From assembly GCA_020891255.1 (NCBI GenBank), contig BQFW01000019.1, positions 1 through 8,156 of the forward strand: a stretch of DNA of 8,156 nucleotides, in the 5' to 3' direction. The DNA is from Entomortierella parvispora E1425. Its lineage: Eukaryota > Fungi > Mortierellomycota. The position numbers were made by a program, and so were the translations under genes. Shown piece by piece: positions 1 through 8,156 of this stretch; the stretch's first letter is position 1, and each line of letters starts with the position of its first letter. Under the pieces are notes generated by a model. That model did not search any database. It had not been told where the DNA came from and was given only the letters and a program-made list of their open reading frames with translations.

Positions 1-261
1 AAAGTGCCCCAAATGCAGAATTTCTTGTCCGTTATAGAGAAATAATATCCTCTAATTTACTCCCAGACCTTGCCTATCTGAGTTTTATAACCGGCTACTT
101 CACTCTCAGCCCTTGCCTAACTGAGTTTTATAACTGGCTAGCTCGATATTATAAATTAATCAAATGTTTTTTAACTTTTTAAACCTTGGCCTTGTTAATG
201 CCTCTAAATTAACTAACTCTTCCTATATTATTAGATCCTTTTCTAATTCTAATTATTCCTT
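1..261 (+). repeat. Left terminal inverted repeat (261 bp visible; probably missing at least 11 terminal nt)
   Basis: Position i pairs with 8146-i from base 1 (AAAGTGCCCC...) to 261. The first mismatch is 262/7884. The repeat includes the ATG at 164 and the first 32 codons of the DNA polymerase ORF. Confidence 0.97.
55..140 (+). repeat. 43-bp imperfect tandem duplication inside the TIR (mirror copy at 8006-8091)
   Basis: 56-97 versus 99-140 match at 37 of 42 nt. The cores are CCTTGCCTATCTGAGTTTTATAACCGGCTA (68-97) and CCTTGCCTAACTGAGTTTTATAACTGGCTA (111-140). Confidence 0.9.
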
Positions 262-3200
262 AAAAAATAAAAAAGAAATTATCACAAAAATTTCTAAATC
301 AGAGGATACTCCTTTTATGGATAAATTCTCTAAATATAAATCTGATTTTAATCAAAAATATATTACTCCTTTAAAATACAAATACACTACTACTTTAAAA
401 TTTTCTCCTTATTTCTGTACTTATGATTTGGAAACATTTAAAAATACTCAAGGTATAGCTACTCCTTATTTATTTGGTATTTATATTCCTAATGTAGGTT
501 TTAAAGCTTTTTATGGATTAGATTGTGTTGAAAAAGCCTTAGAGTTTATCTTTAATTTTGATTACCCTGTTAAAAAAGTCTCTTTCTTCGCCCATTTCGC
601 TGGTGGGTTTGATGTTTATTTAATTATGAAAGATATCATAAAAAGCAAAGGTGCAAATAAAATAGAATATTTAATGGATCCTAGTAATAATATATTTTAT
701 CTTAGTTTCGAACATAATAATCATGTATTTGAATTTAAAGACTCTTATAAATTAATTCCTATTAAATTAGATAGAATCTTAAAAGGTTTTAAAATTATCG
801 TAAATGAATCTTTAGGAAAATTACCTTTTAATCATAATTGGGTGAATGAAAGTACTATTTTTTATAATAATAAAATACCTTCATGGTTAATCTCGCATAA
901 AGAATTATTAGTAAATGCTGGTGTTTTAGATGATAATGAAAATTTTAATTTTCAAAAATATTCTACAATTTACAATGAAATTGATACTATTGGTTTACAC
1001 AAATCTATTGATAAATTCTTTAAAATTTTAGTAGATAATTTTCATATAGATTTTTCTCATTGTATTACTTTACCTCAATTAGTAATGGATTTATTTAGAA
1101 AAAGAAACCTAGATGAGAATATTAAAATTAGAATGTTTAGTAAAAAAATGCAAAATATTATTTCTAAAGCTTACTATGGAGCTCATACTGCTGTTTACAA
1201 ACCTTATGGAGAAAAATTATATTATTATGATATTAATTCTCTTTATCCTGCCTGTATGCTTAAAACAATGCCTATTGGTACACCTAAAAAATTCGATGTG
1301 TCAAAAGGATTAAATAATTTCTTTGGTTTTGCTTTAGTTAAAGTAACTGTGCCTGAATCCTTAAATATACCTGTTTTACCTTTATATGTTAAAATAGAAG
1401 GTTTAGATAGATTAGTATTTCCTACAGGAAGTTTTAAAGGATATTACTTTTCAGAAGAGTTAAAATATGCAGAGTCTTTAGGTTGTAAAATAGAATTAAT
1501 AGAAGCATGGGAATTTCAAAAAGGATATGATGTATTCAAAGATTATATTGAACCTTTATTTGAATTAAAAAGAACAGGGAATAAGGATGAAAGAGATGTA
1601 TTCAAACTTTGTTTAAATACTTTATATGGTAAATGGGGTCAACATAGAGAATATAGACTTAATGTTATAACAGGAGATATGGATCTAATGGAACAAATAG
1701 AAAAAAAATTTACAAATGTTAAACAAATTACATTTAATGAAAATTTAGCTGGTTATTCATTTGATAAAGCACCTAATCCTAATTTATTTGAGGATTCTCC
1801 AGAATTATTTAATGAATTATCTAATCTTTTTGAAAAAGGTCTTGAATCTAGACCTGTAAATATTGCAATAGCTGCAGCTATAACAGCTTATGCTAGAATA
1901 GAAATAGATCATTTTAAACGATTACCGGGTTATGTAGTATATTATTCTGATACAGATTGTGTAATTTTAAATTTACCTTTACCTAAAGAATATTTAGGTG
2001 ATGGTTTAGGTCAAATGAAAAATGAATTATCTGATGATAATTACACCATTGATAAAGATCACGAATACTTTTTAGAAAAAGGTATATTTTTAAGAGATAA
2101 ATTATATAGTATTAAACCTGTAAATGGTAGTCCTATTACTAAATTCTCTGGTTTACATAAAAATTATATTACTAAAGAATTACATGAGACTATAGAAAAT
2201 ATTTATTTAACTTCAGGTAAAAATATAACATTAAATACTGAAATAAGTACTAAAAATATTAATAGTTTTGAAATTAAAAATAATGAAAAAACACAGAAAA
2301 CATTTACATTTAATTATAATAAACGAATTATGATTAGAAACAATGAAGGAACTTGGGTTGATACTAAACCTATCCATATTTCATCTGTTAAAACACAACA
2401 TTTTGATTTAGAACCTATAATAGGACGACAAAATAGAGAAGAAAATTTAAGTAAAAAAGTCTATTTAAGTTATAAAGATGTTAAGATAAATCATTATAAT
2501 GTATTTAATACAGATTATAAAAAATTTGATGGATTTTTATTAGCTTACATAGCACCAATTTATGATAGTAATTATTCAAATAATTTAATTTTAACAGATA
2601 AATTTTTAATTGAAACTGATAACTTGTTTGAAAAAGCTAAAAATATATTATTAGCAAATTTATATACTTTAGCAGAAAAAGCTATAGAAGAAAATATTTT
2701 AGTTGATGGAATAGGTTATTTAATATCCGAAGAATATATTACACCAGAGGGTATTAAAAAAATTAACACTATAAGTTATCTTAATTCATTTAACTCCCTT
2801 AATGAATTAATTAGTATTTATGAACAACATTTAAATGGATTAATTGAGGGTGGACAGGAAAGTGGAAATATGATTGTTTTGAGTGACACTATAGATAAAT
2901 CTAGTTATAATATTAAAACATTATATTTAAGAATACTTATTCCTAAAGATTTGATTAAATCTAATTTAGTTCCAGCTAAATTTTTACAATTAGAATCCGG
3001 TGAAAATAAAATATTATTATTAGAATCAGGTATTACTAATTTTCCACGATTAGAATCAGGTATTACTAATTTTTTACGAATAGAATCAGGAGTAACTAAA
3101 TTTTTACAATTAGAATCCGGTGAAAATAAAATAGAAAATAAAAACAAAAAAATATCTAAAAAACCAAATAAAAAAAATAAAACAATTATTACAAAAGTAG

Positions 3201-4348
3201 TAAAAGCACATTTAAATCCTATTTCTAAAAATCAAATTAGAAAATATTCAACCAATATTTATAAACAACTTGTTCCTTATGAAAATAAAATATTTTTAAA
3301 ACCAATTTTAAATGTTAAAGATAAACTTTTAGCTCCAATAATTTATGATAATATTATTTTATCTGAAATAAATAAAATTCAATTTATTTTAAATAGATTC
3401 CATGATTTAAATTTTGTAAAATTATGGTTAATAAATAAACTTCAAGAAGATAAAATTATAATTAATGCAGAACTTAATGAAAATACAAAAGAATTATTAA
3501 ATATAATTATAAAAATAAATTATGAAAGTATAATTAAAAAAGATAATCTGAAATGTAAATCAATATTTACCTTTAAAAATAACGAATTTATTACAACATT
3601 ACTTAAAAATAAAAAAATAAATAAACTTTATACAGCATGTTATATTATTACTTTTAATAATAAATATTATTATTATATAGGTTCTTCTACAGATTTTATA
3701 ACTAGATTTAATACACATTCCTTAAATATAAAAAATTATAAAAATAATAAAAATAATAAATTGAGTGAATTATTTAAATATTTTTTAGATTCAAAAACAA
3801 AAAATGTAAAATTTAATATAAATATATTGTATTTATCTTTTAATTATTTAACTTTATTTCAAACAGAATATCCTGATTATAAATTAAGTAAAGGAGAATT
3901 TATTTTATTAAATAAAATCTCTGATTTTCTAGTAAAAACTTTAGAAATAAGTTTATTAGAAAAATTTCAACCTAAACTTAACACTTTTAATAAAGTAGCT
4001 TTTAAACATTTCGAATGGAATGATGAATATTTAAATATTTATAGAGAAAATAATAAAAATATAGAATATTTAAAAGCATCAATATATGAAATATATGGTT
4101 TAAGTAGAAATGCACGTATCATAGAAGAGTTAGCTAACTTTTTAAAATTAGAATTTACTAAAAATGAAAGAGAAAAATATTTTAACAAAACAGGTAATCA
4201 TATTTTAATACGTAAAACAACTTTACAAGATATTTGTCAAAGATATAATTTAAATTCTACTGAAGTATTAAATAATCTTAATAGATTCCATTATTATAAT
4301 AATTCTGGATTTTTAAAAAATCCTTTAAAAATTATAAAAATAAAATAA
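164..4348 (+). CDS. dpo: Protein-primed family B DNA polymerase with a long C-terminal extension containing a GIY-YIG endonuclease domain (1394 aa)
   Basis: Motifs: ExoI YDLET (D88), ExoII HFAGGFD (H144), ExoIII YNEID (Y270), YYGA (YxG[G/A]), motif A DINSLYP (D356), motif B KLCLNTLYG (K481), ITAYAR (Tx2[G/A]R), motif C YSDTDC (Y594) and KLY. The plasmid-type C-terminal end YNKR...WVDTKPIHI falls at about aa 739. The frame stays open to TAA at 4346-4348. Confidence 0.95.
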   Translation: MFFNFLNLGLVNASKLTNSSYIIRSFSNSNYSLKNKKEIITKISKSEDTPFMDKFSKYKSDFNQKYITPLKYKYTTTLKFSPYFCTYDLETFKNTQGIATPYLFGIYIPNVGFKAFYGLDCVEKALEFIFNFDYPVKKVSFFAHFAGGFDVYLIMKDIIKSKGANKIEYLMDPSNNIFYLSFEHNNHVFEFKDSYKLIPIKLDRILKGFKIIVNESLGKLPFNHNWVNESTIFYNNKIPSWLISHKELLVNAGVLDDNENFNFQKYSTIYNEIDTIGLHKSIDKFFKILVDNFHIDFSHCITLPQLVMDLFRKRNLDENIKIRMFSKKMQNIISKAYYGAHTAVYKPYGEKLYYYDINSLYPACMLKTMPIGTPKKFDVSKGLNNFFGFALVKVTVPESLNIPVLPLYVKIEGLDRLVFPTGSFKGYYFSEELKYAESLGCKIELIEAWEFQKGYDVFKDYIEPLFELKRTGNKDERDVFKLCLNTLYGKWGQHREYRLNVITGDMDLMEQIEKKFTNVKQITFNENLAGYSFDKAPNPNLFEDSPELFNELSNLFEKGLESRPVNIAIAAAITAYARIEIDHFKRLPGYVVYYSDTDCVILNLPLPKEYLGDGLGQMKNELSDDNYTIDKDHEYFLEKGIFLRDKLYSIKPVNGSPITKFSGLHKNYITKELHETIENIYLTSGKNITLNTEISTKNINSFEIKNNEKTQKTFTFNYNKRIMIRNNEGTWVDTKPIHISSVKTQHFDLEPIIGRQNREENLSKKVYLSYKDVKINHYNVFNTDYKKFDGFLLAYIAPIYDSNYSNNLILTDKFLIETDNLFEKAKNILLANLYTLAEKAIEENILVDGIGYLISEEYITPEGIKKINTISYLNSFNSLNELISIYEQHLNGLIEGGQESGNMIVLSDTIDKSSYNIKTLYLRILIPKDLIKSNLVPAKFLQLESGENKILLLESGITNFPRLESGITNFLRIESGVTKFLQLESGENKIENKNKKISKKPNKKNKTIITKVVKAHLNPISKNQIRKYSTNIYKQLVPYENKIFLKPILNVKDKLLAPIIYDNIILSEINKIQFILNRFHDLNFVKLWLINKLQEDKIIINAELNENTKELLNIIIKINYESIIKKDNLKCKSIFTFKNNEFITTLLKNKKINKLYTACYIITFNNKYYYYIGSSTDFITRFNTHSLNIKNYKNNKNNKLSELFKYFLDSKTKNVKFNINILYLSFNYLTLFQTEYPDYKLSKGEFILLNKISDFLVKTLEISLLEKFQPKLNTFNKVAFKHFEWNDEYLNIYRENNKNIEYLKASIYEIYGLSRNARIIEELANFLKLEFTKNEREKYFNKTGNHILIRKTTLQDICQRYNLNSTEVLNNLNRFHYYNNSGFLKNPLKIIKIK
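2978..3127 (+). repeat. Five in-frame 30-nt tandem repeats encoding 10-aa units with a (L/I)ESG core
   Basis: The units are KFLQLESGEN / KILLLESGIT / NFPRLESGIT / NFLRIESGVT / KFLQLESGEN. TAGAATC(A/C)GG recurs at 2991, 3021, 3051, 3081 and 3111. 2976-3013 is identical to 3096-3133 (38 bp). Confidence 0.97.
3635..3982 (+). other. GIY-YIG endonuclease domain within the dpo ORF (aa 1158-1273)
   Basis: ACY-x10-YIG-SSTDFIT-R-FNT-H has the same spacing as I-TevI GIY-x10-YVG-SAKDFEK-R27-WKR-H31. The downstream LEISLLEKFQPKLN supplies the conserved Glu (3944) and Asn (3980) in an E-x8-P-x2-N pattern like that of organellar GIY-YIG enzymes. Confidence 0.85.
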
Positions 4349-4391
4349 AAAAAATAAATAAAATCCCCCTTTATTATAATAAAATTATTAT

Positions 4392-4463
4392 GGAAGTGTA
4401 ATTTAATTGAAAAATAAAGGAGTTCTTGTTCCTGAAATATGAGTTCAAATCTCATTACTTCCC
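4392..4463 (+). ncRNA. tRNA-like cloverleaf or degenerate tRNA, identity uncertain (canonical numbering gives anticodon TCT)
   Basis: Acceptor stem GGAAGTG/TACTTCC (7 bp, one G-U), T8-A9, D-stem ATTT/AAAT with loop AATTGAA, 5-nt variable loop, and a perfect T-arm ATGAG-TTCAAAT-CTCAT. The anticodon arm is imperfect and the D-loop lacks GG. Confidence 0.72.
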
Positions 4464-4487
4464 TTAATACAAAAGAAAATAATTATT

Positions 4488-4528
4488 GGGTGTTGGGTGT
4501 TGGGGGGAGTGGGGAGTTTTTTAAAAAA
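4488..4528 (+). terminator. G-quadruplex-type G-tract followed by T6 (candidate terminator or 3'-end signal)
   Basis: GGG-TGTT-GGG-TGTT-GGGGGG-AGT-GGGG (4488-4514) fits G3+N1-7 x4 and is followed by AG-TTTTTT-AAAAAA, 4 nt before the convergent rpo stop. The function is inferred. Confidence 0.4.
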
Positions 4529-4532
4529 TTAG

Positions 4533-7500
4533 TTAACTAATTAAATATAAAGCTTTTTGAATATTTTCTTTAAAAACTTTAAATTCACCTGTTTTAGGAA
4601 AATTAGGTAATTCTATTGAATTTCCTTTATCATTTACAATAAATTTACCATTAGTAATCATTTCTTTAGTAATTATTGTGCTTTCATCAATTAATACGTC
4701 ATTATAGAAAACTTTAAAATTTCCTTTTAAATACAGTATAAAAAATTTATGTAAATTTATTAAAAAATCATCATTAGCATAAATTTCACAGAAAGATTCT
4801 CTTACTAATTCGTTTACTAAAGATATATTTTTAACTGTTGTAGCAAAACAATCATGAATTGTATATAAATTATAAATTCCTAAGAATCTTAATTTTTTAA
4901 CTAATAATGAAATAGTAGAAGCATCCATACTATGAATTAAATTAGGCATAAAAGCACTTTCTTGAGAAACTTTATCTATTTTATCTGTAGGAATTACAAT
5001 ATAATATGAAGCTCCTTTAAAAGATCCACTTCTAATTCTTGTTGATTTTTTTCTTGCATAATTTTGATTTATTTCTAATCCAGATGGTGTCATCCATGCA
5101 ACAGGTAAATTAAGAATTGTCATTAAATTAACCATATTTTTAAAGTAATCTACAACTTCTTGTAATTCGGGATGAGTTTCATATAAAGTACTATGAATTA
5201 TATTTGCTAATTTAAATAGATCTTTACCAGATATAAATTTTGTACCATGAATTTTATTTTTAGGTAAATATAAATAAGTATTATCAATATATTTTTTATC
5301 TAAAAATTCTTTAAGATGTTCAACTATTCCATTAATTGTTACATTATAAGGAATTGTCATAATAGAACGTTTAATTATAGAACGATCAATATAAAAATAT
5401 TTTAAATTTACATATAATGGTTCTTTTAAAACTAAATCAGCTATTTTTTCATTAATAAGATCTAAAGCAACAGTATAAAGATCAAAAGGTTTTTCATCTT
5501 CTGTACTAGGTAAAAGATTAACTAATTTAGCTAAATTTTGATTTGCTGACATTATAGAAAGATGTTGTAATCCATTACAAGTAGCATCTAATTGTATAGG
5601 AATATGAGTAGTAACTATATCTGATGTATTAATTTTTTTATATTCTAGACAAAAAGCTAAAAATAATAATGGTTCATCAGCTTTTAACCAAAAATCTTTA
5701 TCAAAATTTATTATATCTTGATGATGAGATTTAATCCAATCCACACGATCTTTAAATGATAATTTACTTAAATCAGATTTAAAAGGATAATGGCCAAATT
5801 TATTATTATCTAAATTTTTAGCACCTTTTCCGAAACAATTAGCTCCATAAACATTTAACCAATAAAGAGAATTTCTAACATTTTTTATTTCTGGTAAATT
5901 TTGTTCGGGTATTTCCCCAAAACTAATATCTAAATTATTAACACTGTTATAAACTTTCATATCTAATTTATCTCCATTAGCAAATAAAATTAATGCTTTA
6001 GCTAATGAAAGACTCTGATAATGTAAATATGATGTATTACTATAAATTCTACCTCTCCAATCAAAAAATAAAGGAAAATAAATTTTTTCTACATCTCTAA
6101 ATAATTGAGCTATTCCTAAGATATTTTTTTCTTGAAAATATCTTGAATTATGAGATTTAACTTGCTCTCTTTCAAAAGAATCTAATTCATCTATAACATT
6201 AGTTTTTTCATGTAAAGAACCTAATATTAATTTATATTCTACACCTTTCTCTAATATAAAATCTAAAACTTCCGTATTAATTTTAAAAGGAATTTCACTC
6301 ATATAATTAATTTGACCATAAATCATATTTTTATCTTTAATTACTGTAGGATTAATATTATTAACTCCTTGATGAATAATATCGTCAAAATGGTAATTAT
6401 TATTTAATAAATAACCTCCATCATTCTCATCACTCCAAGAAGTAGGTTTACAAATCATAGGTAATTTATAACCTATAATATCGAAACTTTTTTCGAAAAG
6501 TCTTAAAGTAGTATCGCTTACTTTAATAATAATTTCCTCTCTTTTCGTATTTTCTATAGGTAAGGTATCAAATTCTAATAAAGAACCCATATTAACTAGC
6601 TCATGTAATAAATATTCACCTATATTTCCTTTATGAATAGAAGAAATATTTAAGCTAATTTTAAAATCTTTAAAACTTTCTCTATTTTCTTTATAAATCA
6701 CATTTTTTTTATTTTTATTTGAAATTATATATTTTTCATCATATTTTTCTAATGCCCAACTATGGAATATACTATCACCTATTTTCATTAAAAGATCAGA
6801 TTTAGTAATACGATTATTATCACTTAATAAAGGTATAACTTCGTTAAAAACTATAGCAGAAATTTGTGTTTTATTTAATTCAAATAAGGGTTTAAAACTA
6901 AATTTAAAATCGGGTTTTTTATTTCTATTTTGTTTTTTAGAAATATCTTTACGTAAATCATGAATATAATCTTCAAATTCTTTTACATGTTTGTGTAAAA
7001 ATTTAAAGCTTTCAGATGTAGCAACACCATCAATAGGAATATTATCCATTTTATGGTGAATAATATCTGTCCATGTAGAATATAAAAATTTTTCTATTTC
7101 TAATTGAATTTCAGTATTAGATTTATTTTTATTTAAATCATTTAATTTTTCTTTAACAACGTTAAAAACAGGACTATAATCGAAATAAATAGTTTGTTTA
7201 GAAAAACTATCTCCCTCTGAAGAAGTAGGGTTTGAATAAGTAGAATAATTTCTTTTTCCGATATCAGATATATTTTTTAAGGGGGATTTATTACTCTCAT
7301 TACTAGCTTTTAAAAGTAAGTCATTAACTTTGTCTTGAATTCCTGAATTACCTTTAATTAATAATTTATTATTATTATGATAAGCATTATTTGAAAATTC
7401 AAAAGGAATACTAAGAAAATCTAGAACAAAATTTAATTTACGAGCTGAAGGAGATATAATATGTCTTTTAGATGATAATCCTCCAGAAACATAAAATCTA

Positions 7501-7982
7501 TTAATTTGTAATTGATTATAAATTACATCCCAAGGATAATCAACAGAGATAAAACAAGATGTTTCTAAAACATGAGTAAATTCTTCAGGAGAATTTTCTC
7601 TCATTTCAACTAATAAGCTAATTAATTTTTCTAAAGTTAAAATAGATAAAAATTTTTTATTAGGAAGAGTGTCAAGACTAAATTCTTGATTTTCAAATAA
7701 AAAGAAACAACCGTTAATATTAGCTGAGGAATTAAATAAGTATTCTAATTTATCTTGTTTAGGGATATCAGGAATACAAGAAATAGAAGTAAATAAATTT
7801 GTAAATTTATTTGTTCTAACACTAATATTAAAAAGGAAAATAATGAAATCTTTATCATAATCAATAAAAGGTAAAACAGGGGAAAAGGAATAATTAGAAT
7901 TAGAAAAGGATCTAATAATATAGGAAGAGTTAGTTAATTTAGAGGCATTAACAAGGCCAAGGTTTAAAAAGTTAAAAAACAT
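4533..7982 (-). CDS. rpo: Single-subunit (T3/T7-like) DNA-directed RNA polymerase, linear-plasmid type (1149 aa)
   Basis: Motifs: FDWRGRIY (D641), motif A LDATCNGLQH (D799), motif B RSIIKRSIMTIPYN (R-x3-K-x7-Y), PNLIHSMDA and motif C IHDCF (H1043). The stop is TAA at 4535-4533. Confidence 0.96.
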   Translation of the reverse strand: MFFNFLNLGLVNASKLTNSSYIIRSFSNSNYSFSPVLPFIDYDKDFIIFLFNISVRTNKFTNLFTSISCIPDIPKQDKLEYLFNSSANINGCFFLFENQEFSLDTLPNKKFLSILTLEKLISLLVEMRENSPEEFTHVLETSCFISVDYPWDVIYNQLQINRFYVSGGLSSKRHIISPSARKLNFVLDFLSIPFEFSNNAYHNNNKLLIKGNSGIQDKVNDLLLKASNESNKSPLKNISDIGKRNYSTYSNPTSSEGDSFSKQTIYFDYSPVFNVVKEKLNDLNKNKSNTEIQLEIEKFLYSTWTDIIHHKMDNIPIDGVATSESFKFLHKHVKEFEDYIHDLRKDISKKQNRNKKPDFKFSFKPLFELNKTQISAIVFNEVIPLLSDNNRITKSDLLMKIGDSIFHSWALEKYDEKYIISNKNKKNVIYKENRESFKDFKISLNISSIHKGNIGEYLLHELVNMGSLLEFDTLPIENTKREEIIIKVSDTTLRLFEKSFDIIGYKLPMICKPTSWSDENDGGYLLNNNYHFDDIIHQGVNNINPTVIKDKNMIYGQINYMSEIPFKINTEVLDFILEKGVEYKLILGSLHEKTNVIDELDSFEREQVKSHNSRYFQEKNILGIAQLFRDVEKIYFPLFFDWRGRIYSNTSYLHYQSLSLAKALILFANGDKLDMKVYNSVNNLDISFGEIPEQNLPEIKNVRNSLYWLNVYGANCFGKGAKNLDNNKFGHYPFKSDLSKLSFKDRVDWIKSHHQDIINFDKDFWLKADEPLLFLAFCLEYKKINTSDIVTTHIPIQLDATCNGLQHLSIMSANQNLAKLVNLLPSTEDEKPFDLYTVALDLINEKIADLVLKEPLYVNLKYFYIDRSIIKRSIMTIPYNVTINGIVEHLKEFLDKKYIDNTYLYLPKNKIHGTKFISGKDLFKLANIIHSTLYETHPELQEVVDYFKNMVNLMTILNLPVAWMTPSGLEINQNYARKKSTRIRSGSFKGASYYIVIPTDKIDKVSQESAFMPNLIHSMDASTISLLVKKLRFLGIYNLYTIHDCFATTVKNISLVNELVRESFCEIYANDDFLINLHKFFILYLKGNFKVFYNDVLIDESTIITKEMITNGKFIVNDKGNSIELPNFPKTGEFKVFKENIQKALYLIS

Positions 7983-8156
7983 TTGATTAATTTATAATAT
8001 CGAGCTAGCCAGTTATAAAACTCAGTTAGGCAAGGGCTGAGAGTGAAGTAGCCGGTTATAAAACTCAGATAGGCAAGGTCTGGGAGTAAATTAGAGGATA
8101 TTATTTCTCTATAACGGACAAGAAATTCTGCATTTGGGGCACTTTAACTAATATCA
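7885..8156 (-). repeat. Right terminal inverted repeat (7885-8145 mirrors 1-261, plus 11 extra distal nt)
   Basis: 7885-8145 is the reverse complement of 1-261. 8146-8156 (AACTAATATCA) has no partner on the left. The repeat contains the RNAP start at 7982. Confidence 0.96.

Follow-up and report, generated by a model that had tools for sequence, protein, structure and literature searches.

Why does the replicase of a mitochondrial linear plasmid end in an endonuclease? The question is raised by a stretch of 8156 nt from the fungus Entomortierella parvispora E1425 (GenBank assembly GCA_020891255.1, contig BQFW01000019.1), referred to at its full length as the window, in which one open reading frame (ORF) encodes both a DNA polymerase (PolB) and a GIY-YIG endonuclease. 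It is probable that the last ~370 codons of this PolB constitute an entire mobile ORF for a GIY-YIG homing endonuclease, of the type called 'mORF', which is translated through PolB. The window itself is a complete or nearly complete linear plasmid of mitochondrial type: it carries terminal inverted repeats (TIRs), a protein-primed PolB (PF03175) and a single-subunit RNA polymerase (PF00940), and its GC content is 14-28%. A preliminary description, made from the sequence alone, had proposed that PolB and a GIY-YIG domain that looks catalytically intact lie in frame in one ORF. This is confirmed for the ORF at 164-4348, in which all seven catalytic or structural residues are kept.

The identity of the endonuclease is supported by motifs, profiles and predicted structure. 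The residues that had been singled out (Y1160, Y1171, G1173, R1181, H1185, E1261 and N1273) were located as described, nt 3635-3982 corresponding to aa 1158-1273, and the GIY...YIG motif pair is present as C-Y-I at 1159-1161 and Y-I-G at 1171-1173. When aligned to I-TevI (1mk0), the Y-to-Y, G-to-R and R-to-H distances equal those of that enzyme (R27, H31), and the insertion of about 30 aa predicted ahead of E1261 was found to be ~32 aa long. Two alignments, of 25 and of 22 family members, show no variation in both Tyr, the Gly, the Arg, the Glu and the Asn, and the His reaches at least 90% conservation. The match of the window ORF to Pfam GIY-YIG (PF01541) falls just below the cut-off (22.3 bits against 22.6) and covers profile positions 3-50 only, on account of the ~32 additional residues between His and Glu; relatives that are 45-52% identical exceed the cut-off (25.9-38.1 bits). 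The top six matches of a family profile among PDB sequences were all GIY-YIG enzymes (T4 EndoII, I-TevI, SLX1, UvrC; E 0.004-0.12). The family profile alone reached these structures, since phmmer with the C-terminal 315 aa had no match among PDB sequences. An AlphaFold2 model of aa 1029-1394 (pLDDT 84.7, pTM 0.74) was also compared with 48,161 PDB chains using VIA-align. Its best match was the I-TevI catalytic domain (1ln0; Z 8.0, rmsd 2.1 A, 89/92 residues), which covers model residues 128-248, or aa 1156-1276, followed by T4 EndoII (Z 5.8), a GIY-YIG restriction enzyme (Z 5.1) and UvrC-N (Z 4.5); both structures suggested earlier for comparison, I-TevI and UvrC-N, were thus recovered. The alpha/beta GIY-YIG fold is present in the predicted model. 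Foldseek with the entire three-domain model gave only matches at E >1.

The fused unit is larger than its catalytic domain. The module (~aa 1022-1394) corresponds to entire mitochondrial GIY-YIG ORFs, free-standing and 340-460 aa long, which align from their own N-termini to window aa 1022-1041 onward in alignments and in tblastn. Its N-terminal helical domain has no Pfam match. At the other end, the modelled C-terminal domain weakly resembles in structure the domains with which I-HmuI (Z 4.2) and I-TevI (Z 3.1) bind DNA, and no NUMOD or HTH Pfam match was found in its 90 aa; judged from the predicted structure, this domain is probably DNA-binding. The interval of ~420 aa noted earlier between PolB and the catalytic motif exists but is not empty, being taken up by a 204-aa PolB extension, an 80-aa linker rich in repeats and Lys, and the 130-aa N-terminal domain of the endonuclease.

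A search with the last 271 aa retrieved 15 proteins of 150-460 aa, and HMMER over 1.84 billion representative proteins found 65 relatives, with no PolB among them; no relative of the ORF was found in a scan of IMG/VR viral contigs. Mitogenome-like contexts of these relatives include a position beside atp9 on an 82-kb contig and another beside nad6. A similar arrangement is seen in the nad4 proteins of Porodaedalea niemelaei and P. chrysoloma (842 aa, YP_010697781.1), which bear the module at the 3' end of a host gene, with catalytic and C-terminal domains 49% identical and a near-identical C-terminal end. Unlike in the window, the host is a basidiomycete mitogenome gene, and the N-terminal domain (aa 1035-1123) is not detectable there. 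The ORF upstream of the free-standing homologue P0009 (L005), which as a PolB fragment would have marked a second plasmid context, is not such a fragment. The GC content of the module is 15.5%, against 24.3% for PolB and 22.5% for the RNA polymerase. Another relative, P0031 (661 aa), is fused to an OTT_1508-like deaminase domain.

The site occupied by the module is found in three states among sister plasmids. L001, an ENA metagenome contig of 9089 nt, carries the same PolB-endonuclease fusion as the window, so the architecture recurs, a point on which the preliminary description had called for a search. L006 (6704 nt), which shares its ENA sample with L001, encodes PolB and RNA polymerase but contains nothing that matches window 3015-4506, and represents the empty state; its PolB ends at the position of window aa 943. 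In L007 (NCBI assembly GCA_040960375.1, contig of 9715 nt), a free-standing endonuclease of 314 aa lies between the polymerase genes on the opposite strand, with 71% nt identity to window 3620-4348. PolB and RNA polymerase flank the site in both its occupied and its empty versions. Two hallmarks of a homing endonuclease gene (HEG) or mORF are thus found: presence or absence at a defined site among close relatives (window 3015-4506 compared with L006), and attachment in phase to the 3' end of a host gene, in the window and in L001. Between the free-standing endonuclease and the RNA polymerase of L007 there are two more ORFs (4526-5331, minus strand; 119 and 137 aa), which have no family match.

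The trees bear on when the endonuclease arrived. In the maximum-likelihood tree of the endonuclease, the three plasmid-borne copies are monophyletic (98/95), and their sister is a group of free-standing mitochondrial copies; the PolB tree reads (L007,(L006,(window,L001))). Endonuclease path lengths are 3-4.4x the PolB path lengths in both comparisons. Since the copies on plasmids are monophyletic and diverge in step with PolB, the association between endonuclease and plasmid is, on phylogenetic grounds, older than the split of these plasmids. Long co-residence followed by loss in L006 would fit these trees, and transfer of the endonuclease between plasmids is a possible alternative. A recent insertion finds no support in these trees and was rejected. 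Among the origins put forward in the preliminary description, a captured or in-frame HEG fits best, given the whole-ORF homology, the absence from L006, the inverted free-standing copy in L007 and the nad4-fused relative, but the word 'recent' has to be dropped.

The last Met codon of the ORF lies at or before aa 903, with none beyond, and free-standing homologues start with Met. Because no Met follows aa 903 and no PolB stop precedes the module, the module, as read from the sequence and assuming standard initiation, can only be produced as the C-terminal part of PolB. An artefact of assembly or annotation, such as a missed stop, a frameshift or an intron between PolB and the endonuclease, is highly improbable as an explanation of the fusion. 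Homopolymer runs, tandem repeats and a high AT content make the linker error-prone, and read-level support comes solely from the sample of the assembly itself. However, the continuous ORF was independently assembled in L001 and again in contigs from two metagenome runs of mine drainage, despite 10-19% nt divergence, and the Logan contigs show no variant at a word depth of ~1000. In the run that holds the plasmid, Logan contigs cover 2300-4600 with 0 differences and 0 indels, although these contigs probably derive from the same data as the assembly and are then no independent proof of the frame. The open frame in L001 and in the mine-drainage contigs is the stronger support for the uninterrupted ORF of the preliminary description.

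The polymerase part also clarifies where the host protein ends. The Pfam DNA_pol_B_2 match spans aa 138-582 of the 1394-aa ORF (E 7.7e-66), and the closest PolBs are P0001 (1351 aa, same fusion, 85% identity), P0077 (951 aa, 74%), P0078 (1000 aa, 70%), P0079 and P0080. The extension at aa 740-943 is strongly conserved in P0077, P0078, P0079 and P0080, including PolBs without endonuclease, and P0077 terminates exactly at the position equivalent to window aa 943. The expectation that such polymerases stop right after the polymerase domain does not hold in this clade, even for its endonuclease-less members. This 204-aa C-terminal extension is a candidate priming domain of the PolB clade. Upstream of the Exo I motif only 84 aa are found (window 164-415), leaving scant space for an N-terminal terminal protein. 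The linker that follows carries tandem repeats at 2976-3133 (TRF), in-frame units of 30 nt (10 aa) that number five in the window and two in L001/P0001. The tail of P0078 likewise has repeats of this kind and ends in a Lys-rich stretch, so that the linker probably belongs for the most part to the native tail of PolB; the junction with the endonuclease ORF is placed at about aa 1003-1022. Repeat copy number also varies in the mine-drainage contigs, where 30-nt insertions are present. Just upstream of the module, A7, A6 and A8 runs lie at 3146-3177, and a -1 slip there would reach a stop within 0-1 codons. Programmed -1 slippage at these runs, yielding an endonuclease-less PolB, was considered and given little weight, as no more than an A6 run is kept in L001. 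In P0079 (1412 aa, on a 167-kb contig), a C-terminal tail of ~480 aa lacks a Pfam match, as do the final 126 aa of P0080 (1305 aa); both proteins are far longer than P0077. The PolB 3' end looks like an accretion site for coding sequence, for P0079 at least.

Table 1. Features of the window (positions in nt; dN/dS is for the window compared with L001)
Feature	Position	Strand	dN/dS	Remarks
Left TIR	1-261			Pairs with 7885-8145; 261 nt, 100% complementary
PolB-endonuclease ORF	164-4348	+		1394 aa: PolB, linker and complete GIY-YIG module; 0 stops, 0 frameshifts
PolB core (aa 85-739)	416-2380	+	0.12	Pfam PF03175 (DNA_pol_B_2)
Native PolB C-terminal extension (aa 740-943)	2381-2992	+	0.12	Clade-specific
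Variable linker (aa 944-1021)	2993-3226	+		LESGxxxxxx repeats, then Lys-rich stretch with A7, A6 and A8 runs; GC3 0.04
Block missing from L006	3015-4506	+		blastn homology to L006 ends at 3014 and resumes at 4507
Endonuclease N-terminal helical domain (~aa 1022-1155)	3227-3628	+	0.35	~130 aa; aligns with N-termini of P0004-P0013; helices with pLDDT 80-95
GIY-YIG catalytic domain (aa 1156-1276)	3629-3991	+	0.29	Y1160, Y1171, G1173, R1181, H1185, E1261, N1273; ~32-aa insertion
Endonuclease C-terminal domain (aa 1305-1394)	4076-4345	+	0.43	~90 aa; end motif NPLKI conserved in family
tRNA-like cloverleaf	4392-4463	+		ARAGORN 'tRNA-???'; between stop codons of PolB fusion and RNA polymerase
T7-type single-subunit RNA polymerase	4533-7982	-		1149 aa; Pfam PF00940, E 4.4e-70; convergent with PolB
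Right TIR	7885-8145			Pairs with 1-261

Selection on the module was estimated from the ratios in Table 1. In the comparison of the window with L001, dN is lower than dS for the module (Fisher p 5e-8) and for the GIY-YIG domain (p 4e-5), and the three indels across linker and module (90, 12 and 66 nt) are all in frame. By these substitution patterns the module is under purifying selection, at a rate of protein evolution ~3x that of PolB (dN/dS 0.35 vs 0.12). The nt identity of the two plasmids is a mosaic, at 97.4% in the RNA polymerase region, 90.3% in PolB and 81% in the endonuclease region, which suggests either recombination between plasmids or very unequal rates. Homing endonucleases often degenerate once fixed. 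A decaying passenger, with an inactive endonuclease whose frame stays open by chance or through its attachment to PolB, is accordingly conceivable. The Pfam score slightly below cut-off, the very low GC of the module and its position in the most diverged part of the plasmid (nt identity 81%, compared with 90% in PolB and 97% in RNA polymerase) are consistent with it. The significant deficit of dN, the retention of all seven catalytic or structural residues in the window, L001 and L007, and the passage of three in-frame indels and no stop across ~450 AT-rich codons nevertheless make such decay improbable.

The same signs of selection could also be read as service to the plasmid. In this main rival reading, a domesticated nuclease, made as part of the PolB and presumably also terminal-protein polypeptide, might cut host mitochondrial DNA (mtDNA) for integration, exclude rival plasmids or process replication intermediates. 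The module has been retained across PolB divergence to ~70% identity, its plasmid copies form one clade, its indels all respect the frame under purifying selection, and it is obligately co-translated with PolB, having no Met codon of its own. However, because L006 is empty and L007 keeps an unfused copy on the other strand, the fusion is not required for plasmid life; the dN/dS of the module is 3x that of PolB, and its nearest relatives are ordinary mitochondrial endonuclease ORFs, free-standing or fused to genes. Domestication is therefore rather unlikely, even if a survey of linear plasmids proposes that endonuclease domains aid plasmid spread into target sites (Wang, Gong and Han 2023, PMC10583447). 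For replication-linked nicking or end processing, one of the roles suggested in the preliminary description, no support was obtained: sister plasmids without the HEG or with an unfused one exist, and the module evolves ~3x faster than PolB.

A more specific role would follow from the way in which such plasmids replicate. The PolB of these plasmids is believed to prime replication and to remain attached to the DNA ends. A nuclease borne by PolB could then be delivered with the plasmid ends and act as a plasmid weapon or integration device, to which only a small probability is given. If true, it might cut rival plasmids that lack the endonuclease, such as L006, leading to their conversion or loss; alternatively, it might open host mtDNA for plasmid insertion. 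L006 co-occurs with L001 in one sample.

Mobility of the endonuclease ORF, read through PolB, remains the preferred explanation, and the following steps can be envisaged. In an ancestor of this plasmid family, an endonuclease ORF would have settled in the spacer that separates PolB from the convergent RNA polymerase gene. In the line that comprises the window and L001, the ORF would have come to be oriented like PolB and lost its own start codon, the endonuclease being made as a C-terminal extension of PolB via a flexible, repeat-rich linker. The nuclease, active now or until recently, is expected to cut endonuclease-less relatives of the plasmid (or some other mitochondrial target) near the PolB 3' end, and repair of the break would copy the endonuclease ORF into the cut site. 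Once fused, the endonuclease would share promoter and start codon with a gene that the plasmid cannot do without, and clean deletion would become costly. Several points weigh against this explanation. No second PolB 3' fragment was found downstream of the module in window-like loci by tblastn with the PolB ORF, and the native PolB tail apparently lies upstream of the module, not downstream. Family members also occupy unrelated sites (the nad4 3' end, beside nad6, beside RNase III genes), and the fork that nests empty L006 among endonuclease-bearing plasmids is supported by just 86/87. Moreover, long residence and purifying selection would fit a function useful to the plasmid equally well.

Other features of these plasmids were recorded. 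An RNase III gene accompanies the endonuclease family: it adjoins the PolB-endonuclease fusion in L001 (4560-5486, minus strand) and, in three mitogenome-like contigs (L002 5074-5940, L003 4325-5191, L009 6786-7598), lies immediately upstream of homologues that are free-standing, the RNase III proteins being 48-52% identical. The window has no RNase III; L001-like contigs have 1214 additional bases between window 4459 and 4533. RNase III and endonuclease may form a two-gene mobile cassette. The tRNA-like element of the window is kept in L001 (4376-4449) and falls within the block that empty L006 lacks; L007 has a tRNA-Arg(cct) at 5502-5574 (minus strand) instead. Inside each TIR there is a 43-nt tandem duplication of 2.1 copies (window 52-140 and 8006-8094). 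As for occurrence, 96% of sampled window words are present in the Logan contigs of one sample, and none of nine other runs with the same species label holds window words in its Logan contigs. Together with the word depth of ~1000, this distribution fits a high-copy, strain-specific plasmid.

Comparable fusions are known from mitochondrial genes. In the mORFs of early-diverging fungi, whole LAGLIDADG or GIY-YIG ORFs lie in phase at the 3' end of atp6, atp9, cox2 and nad3, with hosts including Allomyces macrogynus (atp6), Glomus sp. (atp6, atp9, cox2, nad3), Rhizopus (atp9) and Mortierella verticillata (cox2), and they are transcribed together with the host gene, as shown by hybrid transcripts (PMC3630166). 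An in-frame fusion of rps3 with LAGLIDADG in Ophiostomatales is a comparable case (PMC12308204). The window resembles mORFs in that a whole endonuclease ORF stands in frame at the end of a resident gene, with no intervening stop (a GIY-YIG in Glomus atp9), and in that occupied and empty alleles occur among relatives, the mORF element moving horizontally. However, its host gene is a linear-plasmid replicase and not a core mitochondrial gene, and, unlike in Allomyces and Glomus, no duplicated host C-terminus lies downstream, the junction being a linker of repeats and Lys-rich sequence. The enzyme itself shares with I-TevI (phage T4 td intron; 1ln0, 1mk0, 1t2t) the catalytic residues, the spacing of the first half, the predicted fold and the order of domains, a separate C-terminal one coming after the catalytic one. 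It differs in its ~17% identity, the insertion between His and Glu, the additional N-terminal domain, the weak similarity of the DNA-binding domain and in not being intron-encoded.

Endonucleases have also been described on linear selfish elements. In a survey of mitochondrial linear plasmids from fungi and plants, 95 of them complete, GIY-YIG (PF01541), LAGLIDADG, HNH and PD-(D/E)xK domains are 'frequently identified' and are suggested to help plasmid spread, the GIY-YIG domains being interpreted as derived from homing endonucleases (Wang, Gong and Han 2023, PMC10583447). These plasmids are the same type of element as the window and carry the same GIY-YIG family, but the survey, in the text consulted, gives domain frequencies, without a fusion to protein-primed PolB (pPolB), a three-state series or the plasmid family of the window. 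Homing-endonuclease domains have been found within polinton pPolBs, and GIY-YIG or HNH domains at the C-termini of Tlr1-like helicases (Krupovic and colleagues, PMC11071308; PMC12721341). As in the window, an endonuclease domain is there part of one polypeptide with a pPolB-type replication protein of a selfish linear element. However, those cases are ascribed to intein-type insertions or follow an inactivated pPolB-helicase, whereas the window has a terminal addition of a whole ORF; an intein origin was rejected, since no intein/Hint Pfam match was found and the module is terminal, not internal. The literature search found no description of this PolB-endonuclease fusion, of the plasmid family or of the three-state series, and the exact window protein is absent from a collection of 15 billion proteins. 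The novelty claimed in the preliminary description was nonetheless overstated, as endonuclease domains on such plasmids and in pPolBs, and mORF fusions at gene 3' ends, have been published (PMC10583447, PMC11071308, PMC3630166). Because of these precedents on plasmids and in pPolBs, the fusion, while real, is a new example of a known endonuclease habit and opens no new category.

Altogether, the empty, free-standing and fused states form a natural series within one plasmid family and outline a route by which a selfish endonuclease can obtain its expression from a gene essential for replication. The module, a compact GIY-YIG enzyme, has two accessory domains that are uncharacterised, and the family lends itself to tests of homing between plasmids that reside together. 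The mORF habit of fusion, known from core mitochondrial genes, thereby reaches the replicase of a linear mitochondrial plasmid, here that of an early-diverging fungus.

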